DNA of 63,693 nucleotides, filler included, from Pelomyxa schiedti (taxonomy: Eukaryota; Protista; Evosea): NCBI GenBank assembly GCA_020536535.1. It is 12 parts of 12 records of this genome, joined end to end, with 100 filler letters (N's around TTAATTAATTAA, not from the genome) between each part and the next. Parts side by side here need not be neighbours in the genome. Positions count along the whole stretch, not along the records: positions 1 to 20,697 come from JAHLWZ010001085.1; 11 more parts are not named here. One strand, written 5' to 3'. Positions 1,678 through 18,037 of this stretch are shown piece by piece. Each line of letters starts with the position of its first letter. The first letter of the stretch is position 1. The position numbers were made by a program, and so were the translations under genes. Below the pieces are notes generated by a model, which was not told the origin of the DNA, ran no database searches, and saw only the letters and a list, made by a program, of their open reading frames with translations.

Positions 1678-2465
1678 ATGGCAACGGTCATGAACGGCAG
1701 CGGCGCTCCCGACACTGTTGTCAAGGAGGTGTTGGCACTGAGACAAAGTACTTTGCGATCTAACGAGTGATACCTACGTAACGCGGTATATAAGATCTGC
1801 ACGTTCCGAACTACACGTGCATTGCCGCTGTTGATTTGAATGACGGAATTGGCTACAACAATCAACTACCGTGGCACATTCCTCGTGGGTGTTGCGTTTT
1901 ATTAGTACTATTTTCTTTTCCTGCAAAACTCACAAATCGTAAGACGAGTTGAGATTCTTCTCACTTCTTACTTCCTACACAATGAATATTGGAAGTCATA
2001 ATGCTGTAATAATGGGTAGGAAGACTTGGTGTGCTATTAACCAAAAACCTCTTGCAAACCGAGTATGCGTTGTTCTTTCCAGAGATGTGACATGGTACAT
2101 CGAACCTTTTCCTTTGGCTGTACTAACAGTTTTACAGGCAAGCCACTGGGGCTAGTGTTGCGCCCAGTCTTGACAAAGCTCTTTCCCAATTGGCTGGAGG
2201 TTCAAGGCACCCCACTGTGGAGTCTATATTTGTGATTGGCGGAGCCGAAGTGTTCAAAGAAGCTTTGCAGGATCCACGCTGCACAATGCTACATATTACG
2301 AGAGTAGGCGCCAGCCACCTCTGTGACACCTTCTTCCCTCCACTGCCACCAAACGCCTTTCTCTCACTGTCACGTATTTCCTTGGCACCCGCCAGGGACC
2401 CCGATGGCCGCCCGGTACCTCTTGTCGTGGAGACTCTATTGAGAGCAAATGACACTGGTTTCTAG
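1678..2465 (+). CDS. DHFR: Dihydrofolate reductase, monofunctional (4 exons)
   Basis: Spliced translation: ...[28 protein letters not shown]...NAVIMGRKTW..I..KPLANRVCVVLSR...IFVIGGAEVF...LHITRV...CDTFFP. All hallmark DHFR motifs are present. Stop at 2463-2465 with no thymidylate synthase domain after it. Confidence 0.92.
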
Positions 2466-2827
2466 GGCACCGTTCTCTTGAACTCTCAGTGCCTTCTATT
2501 TCCCCTTGTTCGGGTTGAGTCAATTGACACACAACATGGTTGATCAACCCGACACGAGAACGAAGGCAAAGAAACTAAAAAAAGCGAGGGAAACTTAAAA
2601 AAGAAAGGGGAACCAACACAGAAAAGAACAAACGAAAAAATCAAAAAAAACCAAAAACTTCCTGTGAAGTCCAACACCAAGGACGCTGACAACAACGAAC
2701 GCTCATCGGTTCCTTTCATTTGTGTGACACCGTGGGTCGTTAGTTCGTTTTGAGTACCCACAGCCTCCAGGAACACCCATAATCAACAGCGCCCAACTCA
2801 CCCTCACGCACACAAAATACTTTGTAA

Positions 2828-5800
2828 ATGTCGACGCCAAACCAACCTCACGGGAACCCTGGCCAACCTCTGCATTTGGCCGTAAAAAACAAGGCGCCAG
2901 CACCACGGCCAGCCCTCGTCAATCCCATAATGAACCCCTCGGCCCTGGCTGCCATGGCCACCGCTGCCGCTGCAGCTACGGCGGCCATGGCAGCTTCTGC
3001 TGCTGCGGCCCAAACGGCCGCCGCGGCCGCAACTGCAACTGCGGCTGATACTTTGGCTGTGGCGCTGCAGCCTGGCGCCAAGCCCGGCGTCCTACTTATG
3101 GGACCGGCGGCCATAGCACCCCCGGTCAGGGCACCCTCTCCCAAAAAACCTTCAGTTGCACATCACGCTGCCTCACATTCTACATCTGCCCCACCGGTGG
3201 CCAGTGATCAGACTGCCCGTGGGCCGACTCAATCAGCACGGAATTTGAAAAGAGTTGTTACTCCTGGTGCTGCCAGTGTATCTTTAAGGCTGCTCACTTT
3301 ACATGATGCTTGTAGGCACTCTCAATATTTTTTTTTCCCCCATTAAGCAATCAATTTATGCATTCAACTTCTTGTTTACAGCTGCAAACTTACGTGGATT
3401 GTCACCTGGTTCTTCTTTGCTCTGGATTAATCTGGGTGAGATACCTAAGAAGGAGGGTGTTGATGAAAACTCACAACAGACCGTTGTTACCAAGTGCGAG
3501 CTGTGTTGCATTAATAATGTTGAATATGTAAGTACAGTATAGCTGACACCTCTTTTGCACTTGAACAGTTCCACAATGGTCAGTTATAAGTTGCGTACAG
3601 TTGTTCAGCACCGTCAGTTGAATCTCCCTGTTAAACTCCAGTTTGAGAAAGTTTTCTTCCTGTCTTTCCCTCTCGGTCCAACTAAAAAAAAACCAGAAAA
3701 AAGTCTTGGTGTTTAAAGCTGATTCCAAGACAATGACTCATGTTCATCGCCTACAATCTGTTTTCCTTCCCAATTTGGGAGAATTTCTCACTCAAGTTGC
3801 TCTCAATAAGAACTTTTTTGGTACCCTTCAAGACACATCTTGAATAATCCAACGAATTTTTCAGAGGAGCCCCTACCTCCAAAAGCTATACAAGAAGAAC
3901 TTGCAGGAAGGCGTTATATTGTGTATATGAACACTGGAAGTAGTGATCAAGTTGTTGTAAAAACTCGAAATGGGGTAATTATGGAAAGAAACTTATGTGA
4001 TCTTAGACGCGTTTAGGATTCCACTGAGACACTGGTGTTTGACATCAATTTTCATGATTGCGTTATTTCTTTCAGAACTGACAAAGATCAACCTACTCTA
4101 CTTCAAACGTCTTTTAATGACACCCTTCTTGGTACCTTTCTCCCTCTGTTACTCACATGCTAAACATTCTACAGGGTTCTTGGGTTTAGATCGAAATGAA
4201 AGGTATATAGTGTCTGCAGTTCTTGGTTATGATCCACAGTCAAATGACCTTCACCATGCAACACAGTTCCCCACAAGTTTCTTTACACCAAAGACAACTG
4301 CCAACAAATCGCAGTTACTCGAATCACTGTTGAGCTTTGTTGAAAACAAGAAGGTAAACTTTTTGAACTCTTTTCTTGAGTACGTTGCTTAAGTTAAATT
4401 CTTTCAGCCCGTTCACCATTATGACTATGATGCTGAGCTGGCCAGCACTTTGGCTGATTTACTTTACACAGTCAAAAAATCAGATGCTGCACAACTCAAA
4501 GTCGACTGGGTTAATAAGGGGCTCTTTGGAACTCTCCTTTCAGTTGCATCCGATTTTTTATCCTCATCTTTTTAATACTGGCGTAGATTGTGTGTGAAAC
4601 AGGGGTGACACAAAAAGAAATAGTCGTGGAGGTAAGGAACCTCTCTTTTCATGTCTTGTGTAACACGTTTCCCAGATTTTCCGCCAATTACTTTCACATA
4701 ATGATGGCGGGTGTAGAGATTTATCTTCAAGAATTTTAACACACCTACGCACACATGTGGAATGTGTGGCTGTGGCAGATTTACTATCATCACTTGTATT
4801 TGTATCTGATTTCCGTCGGGTACGTTCTACTCTGCATGTTCAATTACTGACAACATCAGGAATTTGTAGCAGTACTGGGAGTTTCAAAACTTTGTGAAAT
4901 TTATTTCAACGCTTCAGTTCAGATATATGGTTGAAATTGGTGAACAGATTAATACTTACAAAATTAATTAGGTGAACAAACTATAAGTGGGTTCGGGTCC
5001 TGCCCCTTGAGCACACCATCAGAGGAAACAAAAGAATCAAAGACTCCACAAGCAACAAATTCACTGGATTCAAAACCTTCAGCACGAGCAGTATTTCTAA
5101 CAGCATACTCTTTTATTCAATCAACAGTAAACAGGGACCAGGAAAACACCCACTTGTTCCCCGATTACGCATTACACCCAAAGGCTCTGACAATGGTACA
5201 ACAAGATTAGGACGCCGATTGAATACCTTTAGCACCGCTGCATACTGTACATATGCATTCATTAGTCATGCCCTTTAATTTGTGGTTAAGTCAGGGAATT
5301 GATTGCGGGCGCAACTGGCTGCACAGCCAAAGATACACCTCCAGTTGCCTCTGCCCAATCTCAACTTGCATCCTTTGGTGTAAAACTGGGGGAGTGTTGT
5401 ATGTTCAATATCTTTATTTATATAATATTCACGTCACACATCAGACTTGGCATCCCATCTTTCCTACATACTCGAGTATAAACGCATTGTTGAAGACTGG
5501 GAACTTCGTACTGGCATTGACACCAGACCCTTACATTTTTTGAAAAAATTCGTAGTTCAGGTTCGTTTCAAGCCAATTCTCGTGTTGCTGTGAATATTCA
5601 TGGAAGTAGAAAGACCCAACTCAGGACACTACTCCTGCTGACCAAGGAGTTTTGTCCCTACCTATACAACGTATGCGCTGTATACTATTGGAAACCCTTG
5701 CTTCCCTCACAGAGGTGTCAAAATATCTTGGAGCTTTCTACTTTAGTAACTTGCTTTAGAACCCAACCCAATTTGAAGGCGTCACTGGATTTCCTGTTGA

Positions 5801-10500: not shown

Positions 10501-12019
10501 TATCTCTTCTGATTTCTGAATGAAACGGAATCACCGAAAAATAGGAACTAATAACTGAAGCCAGCAAAGCAAAGCTGAACCATAATCCCCATCTCATTGA
10601 TTTCTTTGAATACACCCTTGTACGGGAACCAATTCGAAGACACAGTCTCCGTGATGTGGCTATCAAATTTGAAAATCTAAAGAGCACAATATTGGGACCG
10701 AGTTCCAATGCCGCCAACAGACCTGCCGAAAGCAGTACAAGAGCAGTGACTACTGTGAACGCACACCCACCATCTGTGGTGTGGATGAAATGGGTTCAAA
10801 CAGACGAAAGGGACTACTATGATGATTCTGTGCCAGCAGATATGATAAACGAAGCAACGCAAATAACACCTGATGTTTACATTGGAGCTTTCAAGGCAGC
10901 CTCCAACCGAGAGTTTTTAACATCCGCTGGTAAATTCACTGCAATTTCTCACCTAATTTCTGTGAAGGGATTACACATGTTATAAACTGCACACGCCGCT
11001 CACACCCCTATCCATATTTCTTTGACTGCAGTCGCGCACCTATTGGCCAAGCACAATCAACTGAAGTTTTTCTTAAAATGATTACCGAGTCAATGGAATT
11101 CATTAGACTTGCCCACATACACCACGGAAAAGTAGCCTCCTCTTTCAGCTTTACAACTAAACTTTCTGTAGGTACTTATTTTCAGTGACTATGGCATCTC
11201 ACATGCTCCAGCACTGGCCATCGCCTGGATGATTGATTTTCAGTTGATGGGTTTTTATGAATCCTTCTTGTATGTGAGAGATCATCACTACATATGCCAA
11301 ATACATCCAGTCATTGTTCAACATTTATTCCAATGGGGAACTATCCAGGCCCACAAACGAGGATGCAAGTCTCTTTCTTCCCATTTTCCTCCTGATGAAC
11401 AACAGTACCTGAGAATGGTCCTAGTTGCTGGCCACTACCCAAGAAGCTCCATTTCTCTTGCCTGTGTGGGGCCAACGTATGCTCACTTCGAACCCCTCTG
11501 GACGAGTCTGTGTTCAAAAATCCCCGCCGATGCTCGTGCACAGTTGATCCCATTCCCTTCCAGTTAATTGTTCTAATTTTGCACCCAGTTGATGGATGCA
11601 AGCGATTGCCCACACACCGGAGCCGGTTGTTCACAATTCATTGAGTCTATGAAGCAGAAATACAAGTACTCAAAACCGGACACAGTTGACTGGGGATACA
11701 CAAACACCTCCAACTTGGTATCCGATTTCTCAGTCATCAAAGACAACAGTGTCTTGTATATCCCCACTAATTCCATTCTTGGAAGTACCTGCTAACACTC
11801 AACTTCAGGTGTCCGCCTCTGAAGGGTGTACCAACCCTGTGGCATTCACAAGTCAAGACAAAGGAATGGGAACTGTACCGCTGCAAATACTGTAAGTTTT
11901 TGACATTCGCATTGTATAAAGGCGCCAAGGCAATACCCCTTAGTGCCGCCACACCCACAAACACCTGCAACATCGCAATTGTAACCAACGTGAACCCCCG
12001 TGGTCACAGTTCTTGTTAA
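2828..12019 (+). CDS. Very large multi-exon protein: N-terminal region, PKLNx repeat tract, non-RD protein kinase, dual-specificity-phosphatase-like pseudo-enzyme domain, Cys-rich C-terminus
   Basis: Kinase motifs: IASGAFGTVYKC, AIK, HYDIKCDNILL, DFGEAK, RGTEYIKSPEML, SDVWSLGCLLFELITG. DSP-like motifs: TQITPDVYIGAFKAASNREFLTSAGITHVINCT...KVLIFSDYGISHAPALAIAW. C-terminus: FSCLCG...CSC...CP...C...YRCKYCKF, TAA at 12017-12019. Continuity of the N-terminal exons (2828-7400) with the kinase is likely, but not every splice was verified. Confidence 0.75.
7524..8826 (+). repeat. Array of mini-exons each encoding a [IV]PKLx[LMI] peptide motif
   Basis: Successive exons carry GIPKLNM, GVPKLNL, SIPKLKM, AIPKLNL, SVPKLNI, AIPKLNL, GIPKLNM, GIPKLNM, AIPKLNI and AIPKLAI, separated by short phase-1 GT-AG introns. 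Confidence 0.85.
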
Positions 12020-12342
12020 ACTTTGTAATTACCAAATAGAGGGAAAAAAAAAACAAAAAGTGAGTGAGAAGAACAATTTCTCTTAAAAATAAGTGTCCTA
12101 CAACTCCACTGTCTCTCGCCAGGCCATATAACCAGGGAAAAAAAAAATCAGACTCTGGTTTTGTGTTCTCTTCACAACGTTTCGGAAGCAGGACATGGTT
12201 TATCATCATTTAATTTGGCGATCAAACGTTCGGCAAGAAAAAAAACAGCGGCCAAATAAAAAAAGGTGACATTTTGTTGAGAAATTCAATTGTGGGTGTG
12301 GTGCATAATCAACTTACAAAAAGGGTTTGCCTTCCTCGAAGG

Positions 12343-14786
12343 CTACGAGTCAGAGGGTTGGCTTAAACTCTTGAGCATTTGTGCGAATCTTCTCCTCTCC
12401 ATCCTGTCACTGCTTGCTTTGCGTGTGCCCAAAGACTGTAATTCTTGTTTGGCCTGTTAAGGTATTGTTAGTGTGGCTATTGTGGTTCTTTTTCGGCGTA
12501 CTTCTTCGTTGTCGGGCTGTTTTTCCAGTGCCGTTGTGAAATCCTGTGAGGCACGTTCCCACTCACCAAGCGCGGCATTGCACCGGCCTCTTCTTATCCA
12601 TGCTTTCACATTACCGTTGTCCAACGCAAGGGACTAAAATGAGGGTTAGATGGCACTATTCAATTGAAGCTATTACGAAACCTTGTCGCAGTATTCATAG
12701 GCTTTACTGGGCATCTTTAGGGCAAGATAACATGCAGCACTGTTCAGAAGGCATTTGGCTCTTTGTTGAGTGACACTTTCTTTTTCCGCAGTACTCATCC
12801 CTTCCTCACAAGAAACAAGCTCCAAAGCTCGTAAGTATCTTGGTAAAGTATTAGAAAAAAGACACTAGACAGGAAGGTGTTACTTAGAAAGGGCTGCACG
12901 CATAAGTTTGTGTTGGTAGAGTTCGTTGCCTTGTAATCTCTTTTGCTCTGAACTTTTAATTCTCTCATCAACCGGCATCTTATCAGATGGAACAGGCTGC
13001 AGTAATCGTAAGATGATAATTTTTTTTAAATTACTCACTGGGCAGATATCCAAAAGGGCAACATAATATTGTAGAGGTATGCGTTTATCCGTACTTGTGG
13101 CATTCAATGATTTATCCAGAAATTCTTGATATTCGGGGGTAAGTGTTAGAACGCAAACATCCCCTCTTGCCATGGTCAACAATCCTGCCTCTAATCCAAG
13201 TGGCAGTTTACCTGGTAAGAGTGTTCGAGGTGTAGTTATACGAAGATCAGGCATACCTCCACCAATTGTACAGCTGAATTCTTTTGCTTCCATGACAAAG
13301 CCATTTACATCAGTGGCTTTGTAGTTGATAAGAACGTGGCAGTCATCTGAAACTTTGGGACCCCTTCCTTCCAACAAAATCTGTGTTTACCAGTTATTTG
13401 CTTGGCCAAGGCACACAACTGGAAAGATAGAATACCCGTTTGCTTATCCCACCATCCTTCACAACATCTGTTAGATCTTCTTCCACTGCAACAAGTTCTA
13501 CTTCGCATTGCAAGACGTCAATACCCACGGGCCTGACGAAGAGCTGCTTGGCATTTGGTGGGTGGGCAAAATATTGTGCAGTGCAAACAACGACAGCCAA
13601 TTCACCCTCTTTCATCCCTACTACAGCCTTTTCCAGTCCTTTGAACACTTGATTCATACCAACCTGGAAGGAACTTAATGAACCATTATACGGAAAGGGT
13701 TCATACAGTAAAAGATAATGGTTTAGCCTCTCGAGTAGAGAACAGCACGCTGTTGTCCGGGCGGTAAATGACCAAGTGGGTATATACAATGTCCTTCTTT
13801 TCGGGATTTCGCAAACCATACCCTTTCCTTAGAGTCTTGTACTTCACACCACCATCACTTGTCAAGGGTGAAAGATCAGATGTAGGAACAGCCAAAGCAG
13901 CAGGGAGAGTTTGTGGTTGCTGGGCAGGTGTAGTAGTTGCTTGCTGCGAAGTAATTGGAATCTGGCGTGTTTGTGCCTGGGAAGCAGGGGTGGTTTTTGG
14001 TGCACTAATAAGTATCAGAAAGAGGGAACAGTTGAGGTGTTATACCTTGAAGCCGCGCCGTGTGCTGTGGTAACAGGAATTGTGAATGTTTCTTGTTTTC
14101 CAGGTGTTATCTTGGGCAAAGATATCGTCAGTACACCATCAACCATCTTTGCTGTCATGTGTGTCCCATCGACATTTTTAGGAATAGCGAATTTTCTGGA
14201 GAAATTGCCCCTTGGGCGCTCTCTGGCAGTGATGCGATCTCCAGAAGCCAATGCCATTTCCATTATGTCCCCAGAAACGATGAGTGTGGATCTATCAGGT
14301 GATACCTCCAAAGAAACGTCTTCTTTCCTCACACCAGGTAATTCCATGACAATCTGAAGGATTGTAAATTAAATATAAAGCGTTCACATGCAAAGTGCCG
14401 TATACCTGAACGTGAGTTTGTGACTCACCAATATCAGCTGGAGGCACCCAAGGCTGACTCTCCTGTGCCTCACTTGTCACGCGCCTTGATGGATGTTGCT
14501 GAAGTGTGGGAATAGTTCTGGCCTGTTGTCTGGCGGGTCGATTGCGCTGTTGTTGGTTTGCCCTCTGGAGGGGCATCCTCGATTCTGGATTTACGAAAGA
14601 TCTTCTGTAGGAAGAGGGGTAGGATCTCTGTGGCACAGTGTCGTCGATGAGCATGTCTTCAAGATTTGGGTAGCCGTCGTTGCCGTAGTTTTCGTACTCG
14701 TCGTCATTGTCGTTGTAGAAGTCGTTGTAACCGCCACGAGACAGCGACGGCAAAAAACCAAAAGTGGGTTCCACAAGCCTCCTCAT
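12343..14786 (-). CDS. HSP20/alpha-crystallin - FKBP - FKBP - TPR fusion chaperone
   Basis: HSP20: WVPPADIGE...VMELPGVRKEDVSLEV...LIVSG...RERPRGNFSRKFAIPKNVD...TAKMVDGVLTISLPK. Linked in frame through a 41-nt intron (14045-14005) to FKBP1 (LTSDGGVKYKTLRKG...GLEKAVVGMKEGE), FKBP2 (DGGISKR...PLGLEAGLLTMARGD) and TPRs (KRLQGNELY...LNSAACYLAL...NVKAWIRRG). TAG at 12345-12343. Confidence 0.85.
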
Positions 14787-15177
14787 TGCTTTGTATTATG
14801 TGTGTTTCAAGATCTGTGTTGTCCCTTGCTTTCTTTGCTTTTTTTTGTTTTTATGTTGGAGCTTGGTTTCCTGGTAGAGCTGTGTGTTGTTGTCGTGTGT
14901 TTTTGCCTTCTGTTTTTTTTTTGTTTTGTTTCGGCGTTTTGGTTCTGTATTTTGTGCAAACACCAAACGTCCATTGGGCTTTTTGATGCCATTTCACTTG
15001 CAGCTCCTTCAGTTTTCGTCTGGGGTACGCGGCACATCCGCCCAAATACAAACGAAATCTCTTCTTTAATTTGCTTTCGTTTTTATTTGGATTTCTTGTC
15101 TTGATGGGTTCTTCTGAGCCTGTTGTGGTCCCGAGTGTCTTCTTCTTCTGTGGAGAACTCTTGCCCTTAGGTCTCCA

Positions 15178-16917
15178 GTGCCAGACCCCAAGCGAAACCA
15201 TCACAAAAAGTGGAAAAACAGCCATGAGATGAGCAGGGGGTCCATATCGGTACACAACAGACTCTCGTATTTGACGCGTTGTTTGCACACACGGCTGTCA
15301 CTCGATGCGTGTTTGGCTCAGCATGACAGGCTACTTTCATCAGGGACGGCCGGCCAGCCAGTTGTGCCTCAGAAACTTCCTAGAAAACTCAAGCCCCTGG
15401 AGGAGCCGGTGTTCTCCGAAAAGTTGTTTGCTCGCTGCGGGGACTGTGCCAGCGACCTCGCAGACAGGCTCGAGCACCTGCTGGACTACATCGGTGATTC
15501 GAGGAATCTCGTACCAGAGACAATTGTGAAGGTCTTTGTTCAGATCAGATACGACCTTATCGAGCACAGCGCGGTAGAGCTCTATGACGCCTACTCTTTG
15601 GGAAGAGTCTGCTTTGCTCTGGCAATGCCTGTCATTTGGTCCGAAATTCTGACTTGGCAGGACTTTGGAATTTCCGGCTTAAGCGAAGCGGATAGCGTCG
15701 GGCAAGTTCCTCAGAATAGTTCTGAACCGTTATGCCAAGGTGATGAGGCTGGGAGAACTGCGGCGAGGCCGGAAGGGGAACCAGAGAGGAAACCCGATTC
15801 CGCAGTTGGAAAATGGATTGCTTCAGATTGGTGTTGTGCTTGCGCTAACAGGTTCGCTACTTGGCGGGAGTTACTACGCGAAGCGAGGGGAGTATCTTTT
15901 TGTGACCACCACATATTCTGCGATTCATGCACGTCGGTTGTTTACCCGCTGCTGTTTCAGGCACTACAGGTCACGCCGGACCTGAAGAATTTCACCCTGC
16001 TGAAGTCCGTCGATGCGTGGAGTGAGTGTTTTCACACACTGGTGAGTGATGTTGTTGCACCGGCTATTATTCCAAGGATTAGCTCACTTATGGAGAATAA
16101 CTTTGAACCTTGTGACCCTTCTCGTGCACTGCAACCTTCTGATCAAGCCGCATTGCTGGAGACCCAACGAAATATCGCAGTGACTATTGCGGTGTGGCAA
16201 CCCAAATTGCAAAATCACCTCAATACATTCTACATGCTCACCTCGTCGAGACTCAGTAAATTCTTTTTGGAGTGCTCTGACCTGGTACTCATCAGGGAGA
16301 TATTTGTGATATGGCAGTCCTTGTTTCCACAGGAAATTACCAACTCCCTTCTCCTTCAAGGAATTCTGCCGCGGATTTCATCTGAATTGGTTGATATTCC
16401 CGTATTTGTTGAACTATCACCCCCGGTATCACTGTTGGACTCGAATAACCTCAAATCAATTCTGGTGTGGACCACCACTTTCGCTGAAGCCGGAAAAGAA
16501 TGCTGGAGTGAGTGGGTCACAATGTTTGAAAACTCTTTTTTTGCTAGATGGCTTTTGTCACTACAAGCCTGGCTTCAAAACGAAACTGCAACAGAAGTGG
16601 TGTCATCTTTAAGTGGACTTCACCAACCCAATTGGGGTTTGCTGGCCAACTGGTACAGTATGTGGAAGCAAGAGCTTTCTAGTACTTCAAGCCTAATGGT
16701 GTCCACGGATGGATTTCTTCTTCATTTTCATGTAAGTTACTCCTGTTTCTTTTTTCAATGCAAATGACATACGAACTAGACAGCTCTTCAGCTAATTGAT
16801 TCCGTCCTCGCGGAGCTATCGGCTGACGATGCAAGCACGAGGATAGAAACAGAAGAAGTGCAACCAACGACACCCACGCCCTGTGGTTCTAAGTTTCCAA
16901 CCCCCAAGTTGTCATAG
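15178..16917 (+). CDS. GCFC-domain protein, TFIP11/Ntr1 C-terminal-like; no G-patch seen
   Basis: MFENSFFARWLLSLQAWL...PNWGLLANWYSMWKQEL resembles TFIP11 FFPKWLQVLCSWL..PNYEEITKWYLGWKSMF. Last intron about 16732-16779, final exon TALQLID...KLS*. Start uncertain (first in-frame ATG 15229). Confidence 0.65.
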
Positions 16918-16991
16918 TTTCCCGGATGCGAATCTCAAGTCATAAACACAAAATTAAATACGCGACATTGTTCACCACGCGACGAGACGAG

Positions 16992-18037
16992 ATGGATACA
17001 GGATCTGGACAAAGAGGAGGATCACGTAAACGCAACAGCGCCGCAAGTACTACCACTACTCCGGCGACCGGAAATGCGCTATTGCCGACGCCAACTGAGC
17101 CCCCTGATAGGCACACTACCCACGTCGGCGTCGTAACTACCGCGTCGGAAACCGCTAGCGCACATCAGCAACAACAACGCCCGTCGCTGGCGGCACCACC
17201 CGCGGCGCACATAGTTCCAGTTGATGTGGGGACTAGTGGTTTGGTGGCGAGCGCGGCGTCTGTGGGTGGCGACAAATCTGCTTCGTATTTGTCAGGAAAG
17301 CACCCGTTGGGTCGCCAGTGGGTGATGTGGTATGACAAACCGGCAGCTGCGCAGACAGAGAGTACTTGGGGAGAAAACATAAAGCGGCTCATGCTTTTGA
17401 GTTCTGTTGAAGATTTTTGTGGGTAAGAGCGACTCTGATGGACAATTTCTCGCTCACCTTTTTTTAACCCCAGAATGTACAACAACATGCTAGCGGCTTC
17501 GAGATTACCACCAGGTGCTAACTACCATATGTTCAAGCACGGTATAGAACCCAAATGGGAAGACCCATCTAACGAAGGTGGGGGCAAGTGGGTGTTATCA
17601 GTTTCAAATAATCCCTCTTCGGGTTCGCTTTGTGATAATATATGGAGAGAAGTCGTGTGTACTTTCTCCCAACAAGGCGGCGGACCAACTAATAATGCTT
17701 TAGCTTTTCGCGTGCATTGGAGAACTGTTTACTGAAGAGACAGCTGCAGAGATATGTGGGGTTGTTGTTAGTACGAGAGCAAAATACATCAGAATTGGTA
17801 TCATTGAGACACACACTTTCTCCTTTCTGACAATTCCCTAGCATTATGGACCCGAAATGTAGATGAAAAATGTATAATGAAAATTGGGTGTGTTTTCCTC
17901 CAAGGCATTCCAGAAATTGTTAACGTGAACTCCCATTTAGTACTGAATTTAGACTCGTGTCCTGTGTACCTCTGGGGATGAAGCTCTCCTATCAATATCA
18001 CTCTCCCAGCAGTGGTCAGCCACAGTTTTCAGTTTAG
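16992..18037 (+). CDS. EIF4E: Eukaryotic translation initiation factor 4E family member
   Basis: HPLGRQWVMWYD...TWGEN...SVEDFCGMYNN...YHMFKHGIEPKWEDPSNEGGGKW...W...CIGE.F...ICGVVVSTRAK..RIALWT...IG...YQYH, reconstructed over about 5 exons. Confidence 0.93.

Follow-up and report, generated by a model that had tools for sequence, protein, structure and literature searches.

Small heat-shock proteins (sHSPs) are believed to hand over what they bind chiefly to Hsp70 and Hsp100, and to our knowledge a physical link between sHSPs and the co-chaperones of Hsp90 is not an established route. Described arrangements combine other HSP20-like folds with tetratricopeptide repeats (TPR): DNAAF4/DYX1C1 is built as CS-TPR, SGT1 as TPR-CS-SGS, and p23 is found with FKBP51 on Hsp90. 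Among TPR proteins that carry an FKBP domain, those of FKBP38/FKBP8 and AIP/XAP2 are inactive or weakly active. Here we describe a gene of the anaerobic amoeba Pelomyxa schiedti (Archamoebae) in which an sHSP is joined in frame to an FKBP-FKBP-TPR body of the FKBP51/52 type. It runs on the minus strand from 14786 to 12343 of a stretch of DNA of 63,693 nucleotides, filler included (the whole stretch analysed, hereafter the window), whose positions 1 to 20,697 come from record JAHLWZ010001085.1. We consider it likely that this gene encodes a real fused protein in which both halves function as modules. The in-frame fusion is supported by the logic of the reading frame, by an independently deposited gene model and by one spliced RNA contig.

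Gene structure and transcript evidence

The fusion gene consists of 10 exons and 9 GT..AG introns of 41-55 nt, whose limits were set from the reading frame and the GT..AG ends. The coding sequence of 2025 nt comprises 674 codons and the stop, the frame is kept through all nine introns, and an in-frame stop lies 3 codons 5' of the ATG. The features of the gene are as follows.

14786-14406, minus strand: exon 1, with the ATG at 14786; residues 1-127, the sHSP N-terminal region
14405-14354, minus strand: intron 1, 52 nt, GTATAC..CAG, phase 0
14353-14046, minus strand: exon 2, residues 128-229 plus 2 nt; most of the alpha-crystallin domain and the IPV motif
14045-14005, minus strand: intron 2, the fusion intron, 41 nt, GTATAA..TTAG; a CTGAT that resembles a branch site lies 14 nt from the intron's end
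14004-13707, minus strand: exon 3, residues 230-329; the linker (14004-13860), then the N-terminal half of the first FKBP-like domain (FK1)
13706-13664, minus strand: intron 3, 43 nt, GTATGA..CAG
13663-13436, minus strand: exon 4, residues 330-405; the C-terminal half of FK1 and the first part of the second FKBP-like domain (FK2), followed by a 55-nt intron
13380-13257, minus strand: exon 5, part of the FK2-like domain
13256-13212, minus strand: intron 5, 45 nt, in frame and stop-free
13211-13039, minus strand: exon 6, part of the FK2-like domain
13038-12997, minus strand: intron 6, 42 nt, in frame, directly 5' of exon 7
12996-12884, minus strand: exon 7, the first exon of the TPR/C-terminal part (exons 7-10), followed by the 45-nt intron 7
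12838-12682, minus strand: exon 8, TPR/C-terminal part, followed by the 48-nt intron 8
12633-12502, minus strand: exon 9, TPR/C-terminal part, followed by the 48-nt intron 9
12453-12343, minus strand: exon 10, TPR/C-terminal part, including the TAG stop

The two halves of the gene meet at intron 2. Exon 2 ends TCA AG at 14046, the intron reads gtataa...ctgatacttattag, and exon 3 opens T GCA CCA at 14004; splicing preserves the frame and gives the junction peptide ...HGAASSAPK.... In donor type (GTAT..) and in size this intron is like the others of the gene. Read upstream from 14004, the FKBP frame meets a TAA at 14043-14041, and it contains no ATG either in exon 3 or between exon 3 and this TAA. 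Past the junction, no in-frame Met occurs before M332, which lies midway through the first FKBP domain. A sequence-only reading of this locus had proposed the same gene span, the same 41-nt intron with its GT..AG ends, CTGAT and flanking codons, and an FKBP part that lacks a start of its own, and each of these proposals holds. It had placed the exon after the junction at 14004-13700, of which the start is right and the end is 7 nt off: exon 3 runs to 13707 and its donor GT occupies 13706-13705.

The translations of all ten exons are found, in order and identical, in a deposited 674-residue P. schiedti protein (P0001), which adds to them only single residues at three split codons. Once checked in this way exon by exon, P0001 stood for the spliced product in our analysis. 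NCBI lists it as 'peptidyl-prolyl cis-trans isomerase FKBP4 [Pelomyxa schiedti]', a record with a single member on a single contig of 20,697 bp, and its precomputed Pfam list includes both PF00011 and PF00254. The GenBank name 'FKBP4' thus conceals the sHSP half, and the annotation could be improved. Genome searches covered the 52-Mb assembly of 5337 contigs, in which the fusion gene lies on contig C1085. There are 14 alpha-crystallin matches in this genome and FKBP matches on 12 contigs, and the two coincide only on C1085. Because the stretch from exon 2 through the intron to exon 3 is single-copy in the assembly, the spliced RNA form described below does not derive from a retrocopy present there. 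The genome paper, which is based on amplified single-cell DNA and Smart-seq2 single-cell transcriptomes and reports 7.4 introns per gene, names neither FKBP nor HSP20 (PMC8887013).

For transcripts we used two single-cell RNA-seq runs, whose Logan contigs were aligned over 11500-16000. One contig (X1 record 3; 203 nt, depth 3.9, 0 mismatches) covers 13823-14004 and continues at 14046-14066, so that intron 2 is precisely removed; its junction, 14046 to 14004, is a 41-nt skip with GT..AG ends on the gene strand. This contig and the deposited protein agree with the in-frame splice into the linker and the first FKBP domain that had been read from the sequence. Introns 7, 8 and 9 are spliced out in a second contig (X2 record 4), and intron 1 lies outside the RNA contig coverage. 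Two further runs, of DNA, contain all sampled words of the stretch, and all four runs come from one study.

Several observations weigh against a fused and functional product. The bridging contig has just 21 nt on the sHSP side, below the 31-nt bridge rule applied, although it is very unlikely that 21 nt would by chance match without error right up to the predicted end of the exon. Positions 14067-14786 are without any RNA contig, which puts a full-length fused mRNA beyond the RNA seen. Another contig (X1 record 2, 13489-13743) runs unspliced through intron 3 (13706-13664). This contig is pre-mRNA or contaminating DNA, and because the RNA libraries contain such pre-mRNA or genomic DNA, presence in RNA has a limited meaning. 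The upstream region (14787-15177) contains no canonical heat-shock element, and the count of such elements across the window is at chance level. Furthermore, FK1 is degenerate, with most residues of the pocket for peptidyl-prolyl isomerase (PPIase) activity and FK506 binding lost. No ortholog was found in the searches described below, and what we say of function is drawn wholly from homology.

RNA is absent over exons 1-2 beyond the 21 nt of the bridging contig, which would favour a locus that makes two separate products: an sHSP from its own mRNA, and an FKBP-TPR protein from an internal promoter with its start at M193 or M197. In a variant of this arrangement, the gene predictor would have adopted a fused transcript that is in fact a rare 'conjoined' RNA made by read-through. 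In-frame Mets are indeed present at 193 and 197 within the sHSP part, and a product begun at either would retain no more of the sHSP than its last strand and the IPV motif. However, the stop reached when intron 2 is retained (14015) lies about 10 nt from the FKBP frame (14004), too short a distance to accommodate a terminator and a promoter, the FKBP exon is without an ATG, and intron 2 belongs to the same donor type and size class as the gene's other introns. We regard the internal promoter and its read-through variant, taken together, as unlikely.

A different way to obtain two products would be to regulate intron 2 itself, so that splicing gives the fusion and retention under stress gives a stand-alone sHSP of 242 residues. 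With the intron retained, the frame reads ..AASRYNTSTVPSF and then meets an in-frame TGA at 14017-14015, at the position where the sequence-only reading had put a stop. Unspliced material of the gene is present in the RNA library (intron 3, X1 record 2), and in many eukaryotes introns are retained more often under heat stress. On the other hand, the sole contig across intron 2 is spliced, there is no heat-shock element upstream, and the retained tail would extend 20 residues past IPV, compared with 1-3 in the ten other readable sHSP loci. The stress-operated switch that had been suggested for this intron is thus unsupported, and we think it improbable.

The fusion gene has neighbours on both sides. 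The convergent neighbour (11500-12039, plus strand) has RNA-confirmed introns at 11543-11588 (46 nt) and 11756-11808 (53 nt), and its contig comes to within about 300 nt of the fusion gene's stop codon. Upstream, a divergent 529-residue frame (15178-16767, plus strand) has a GCFC match of 25.5 bits, below cut-off, and an exon at 16926-17423 (plus strand) matches the start of an eIF4E domain at 21 bits, also below cut-off.

The two halves of the predicted protein

In the fused protein, residues 1-229 make up a full sHSP: the N-terminal region is aromatic, an alpha-crystallin domain follows, and the tail bears an IPV motif. Pfam places HSP20 (PF00011) at residues 119-221 of P0001 with 62.1 bits against a cut-off of 20.8 (E 5.7e-17), exon 2 alone scores 60 bits (E 2.7e-16), and the alpha-crystallin domain matches non-metazoan sHSP structures in the PDB (E 4e-12). 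The CS family (PF04969) is absent among the Pfam hits of P0001 at E <= 0.01, and ArsA_HSP20 appears as a weaker second assignment. The domain is preceded by a 112-residue N-terminal region, whose aromatic start is like that of S. pombe Hsp16 and of the paralogs in this genome. Exon 1 encodes this start (MRRLVEPTFGFLPSL), then a Q/R/N-rich, disordered-looking stretch, and also strand 1 of the alpha-crystallin domain (WVPPADIGESQTHVQ). The IPV motif, of the IxI/V type, occupies residues 219-221 within ..ETFTIPVTT.. and is encoded at 14080-14072. From these features we infer that the sHSP module may oligomerise and act as an ATP-independent holdase.

The nearest sHSP paralogs in the genome are about 40-45% identical to this half within the domain. 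The 10 other sHSP loci with a readable C-terminus end 1-3 residues past the IxI motif, for instance with ..KVEIH, ..KINIS or ..IIPIQAP before the stop; the fused gene has 8 residues past IPV before the splice, and 20 with intron 2 retained. At several of the other loci the open frame starts just 5' of a homologous ..ELPGV, as it does after intron 1 of the fusion gene, and these frame starts therefore fit an intron at a position similar to that of intron 1. Separately, four loci (L001, L002, L003 and L005, on contigs C104, C223, C2156 and C1986) form a single-exon sHSP subfamily with frames of about 280-300 residues. These proteins have a long acidic N-terminal region rich in Ser, Pro and Glu and share the ending ..PESHKVEIH before the stop, and they are far longer than typical sHSPs.

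The sHSP half is followed by a linker of 49 residues (230-278), rich in T, A, P and Q, and then by the FKBP-TPR half. Pfam finds FKBP_C in two stretches of P0001 (E 4.4e-20) together with TPR_1/TPR_2, and exon 4 alone gives FKBP_C with E 7e-5. Residues 279-670 align in a single stretch with residues 29-418 of human FKBP51 (E 4.4e-35), and the match to FKBP52 has E 2.7e-32. The FKBP-FKBP-TPR order that had been proposed from the sequence is therefore borne out by Pfam and by the FKBP51 alignment, whereas the term 'immunophilin' that went with it claims too much, the FK1 pocket being mostly replaced. We take the PPIase/FK506 pocket of FKBP51 FK1 to consist of Y57, F67, D68, R73, F77, V86, I87, W90, Y113 and F130. 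In the P. schiedti protein Y57 is replaced by L307, F67 by L317, D68 by F318, F77 by L326, I87 by F336, W90 by L339, Y113 by A362 and F130 by C382; R73 falls in a gap, and V86 aligns with V335. Because the pocket residues are mostly replaced, FK1 is probably neither an active isomerase nor an FK506 binder.

Contigs C41 and C110 of this genome each carry a canonical FKBP-TPR gene, and the two are about 30% identical to the fusion gene. Where they can be aligned, they preserve more of the pocket: the C41 paralog retains HY and FD at its first three positions and the C110 paralog retains the W. The C41 paralog carries a frame-interrupting insert at the position homologous to intron 3, which therefore fits a shared intron, and both paralogs carry one at the position of intron 5. 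Within the fusion gene, introns 5 (13256-13212) and 6 (13038-12997) are stop-free multiples of three, and the FK2 region consequently resembles one open reading frame of 165 codons (12880-13377). Retention of intron 5 or 6 would add 15 or 14 residues, respectively, without truncation.

Exons 7-10 encode a three-repeat TPR domain and a C-terminal helix extension (..RRRFAQMLKSLSQ..). The two-carboxylate clamp of the TPR domain is kept, with R524, N528, N574, K604 and R608 at the positions of FKBP51 K272, T276, N322, K352 and R356, and we infer that it may bind the EEVD-type tails of Hsp90 or Hsp70. Also kept is the segment that matches the FKBP51 helix after the TPR domain (the C-terminal or helix-7 extension), and it is this helix that touches the C-terminal domain of Hsp90 in the FKBP51 complex. 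The products of the two cytosolic Hsp90 genes in this genome have KMEDVD as their last residues, which differs little from the usual MEEVD. These two cytosolic-type genes are on one contig, C197, at 62425-64012 and 2114-3717 (loci L025, L026 and L029). Elsewhere in the assembly, an Hsp90-family gene lies next to an FKBP gene, about 2.5 kb away, on both C907 (44212-48860) and C1089 (13322-17970); each gene scores the same on the two contigs, which are probably duplicated or allelic.

The loss of most catalytic residues in FK1 could also be taken to mean that the FKBP-TPR half is decaying as a pseudogene downstream of an sHSP gene, or that the locus is a chimera of whole-genome amplification. 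The FKBP_C exon match is weak (28 bits in the genome scan), and the assembly was made from amplified single-cell DNA (PMC8887013). Yet about 445 residues (230-674) are open over eight exons in which all splice sites are intact, and both the TPR clamp and the C-terminal helix are conserved. Moreover, introns 7-9 are spliced in RNA, the fusion junction is present in RNA from a separate library, and both DNA runs contain every sampled word of the stretch. We therefore hold decay or chimerism to be very improbable, and favour a genuine fused protein.

Searches for the same architecture, and a possible hand-off route

No second sHSP-FKBP-TPR protein was found in protein, Atlas, metagenome or literature searches. 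A HMMER search of 1.84 billion representative proteins was made with an FK2-region query, consisting of residues 406-541 plus the two in-frame introns. It recovered P0001 at 100% identity and otherwise only repeat or low-score noise, with no ortholog, which is weak evidence given that the region is poorly conserved. A word index, queried with the complete protein and separately with its alpha-crystallin and FKBP-TPR regions, gave P0001, SPAG1-type TPR proteins and P0006, an unfused FKBP-TPR protein of 440 residues with 26% identity from a 1.6-kb Logan contig. The reach of the word index is short for a diverged protein (human FKBP4/5 were missed), and the search tools cannot query by domain architecture. 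In the ESM Atlas, a search by features returned ordinary FKBP+TPR clusters only, and the junction region was without a match; a JGI metagenome scan gave a single TPR-only match. An sHSP-FKBP fusion is likewise unreported in the literature searched. The architecture was thus found only in P. schiedti, and the blanks elsewhere are weak evidence.

If the fused protein is made, its parts suggest a way in which it might work. The sHSP module would self-associate into dimers or oligomers and hold non-native proteins, and the long linker would give this module reach. The TPR clamp and the C-terminal helix would dock on the MEDVD tail and the C-terminal domain of Hsp90, and possibly on Hsp70, and docking would place the sHSP-bound substrates beside an ATP-dependent chaperone. 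The FK domains, FK1 in particular, would serve as a scaffold or a client-contact surface rather than as a prolyl isomerase. We put forward such a hand-off from holdase to Hsp90 by a single chain, with a catalytically dead FKBP scaffold, as a tentative proposal that is somewhat less likely than not to be right. It is nonetheless a plausible reading, favoured by the intact TPR clamp, the kept helix, the MEDVD tails of Hsp90 and the complete sHSP with its IPV motif. Were the 41-nt intron sometimes retained, free sHSP could be released as well.

As for the origin of the gene, the most likely course is that an sHSP gene lost its usual stop just past the IxI motif, after which a short intron would have bridged it to a diverged FKBP-TPR paralog downstream. 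The endings of the sHSP paralogs and the insert positions in the FKBP-TPR paralogs agree with descent from ordinary sHSP and FKBP-TPR genes of the P. schiedti lineage. The gene would then be a case of fusion made by way of a very short intron.

If true, the proposed hand-off would make the gene a natural 'Rosetta stone' fusion and point to a direct route from an sHSP to Hsp90 through a TPR co-chaperone, one that may also operate between separate proteins in other eukaryotes. A natural single chain is in addition a ready-made construct for testing the link between sHSPs and Hsp90 co-chaperones. With one species, one locus and thin RNA evidence, the fusion is a lead and not a result.

Comparison with known systems

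The FKBP-TPR half has the same order of FK1, FK2, TPR and C-terminal helix as FKBP51/FKBP52 (FKBP5/FKBP4) and the plant ROF1/FKBP62-type proteins, and in the P. schiedti protein this body is preceded by 278 further residues, an sHSP plus a linker. The P. schiedti protein shares little identity with FKBP51, from which it also differs in the replaced residues of the FK1 pocket.

The sHSP half is like S. pombe Hsp16, wheat Hsp16.9, yeast Hsp26 and Xanthomonas HspA in its aromatic N-terminus and IxI/V motif, and its alpha-crystallin domain shares with non-metazoan sHSPs the long loop that carries the beta6 strand. In contrast to typical sHSPs, the P. schiedti protein continues past the IxI motif into a 445-residue co-chaperone body.

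In combining an HSP20-superfamily beta-sandwich with TPR on the Hsp90 machine, the fused protein resembles DNAAF4, SGT1 and the Hsp90:FKBP51:p23 complex, where the two elements occur in one chain or in one complex. The structure hits of the FKBP-TPR half include PDB 7L7I, which we take to be linked with the Hsp90:FKBP51:p23 complex. As an idea, an HSP20-like fold plus TPR on the Hsp90 machine is already known. Unlike in the CS/p23 co-chaperones, however, the sandwich of the P. schiedti protein is a true alpha-crystallin domain with sHSP flanks, and its TPR partner is an FKBP51/52 body.

Finally, a degenerate FKBP pocket next to a functional TPR domain is also the condition of FKBP38/FKBP8 and AIP/XAP2, both families being among the PDB hits. 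FKBP38 and AIP differ from the P. schiedti protein in that they have one FKBP domain and no sHSP, and FKBP38 is membrane-anchored.

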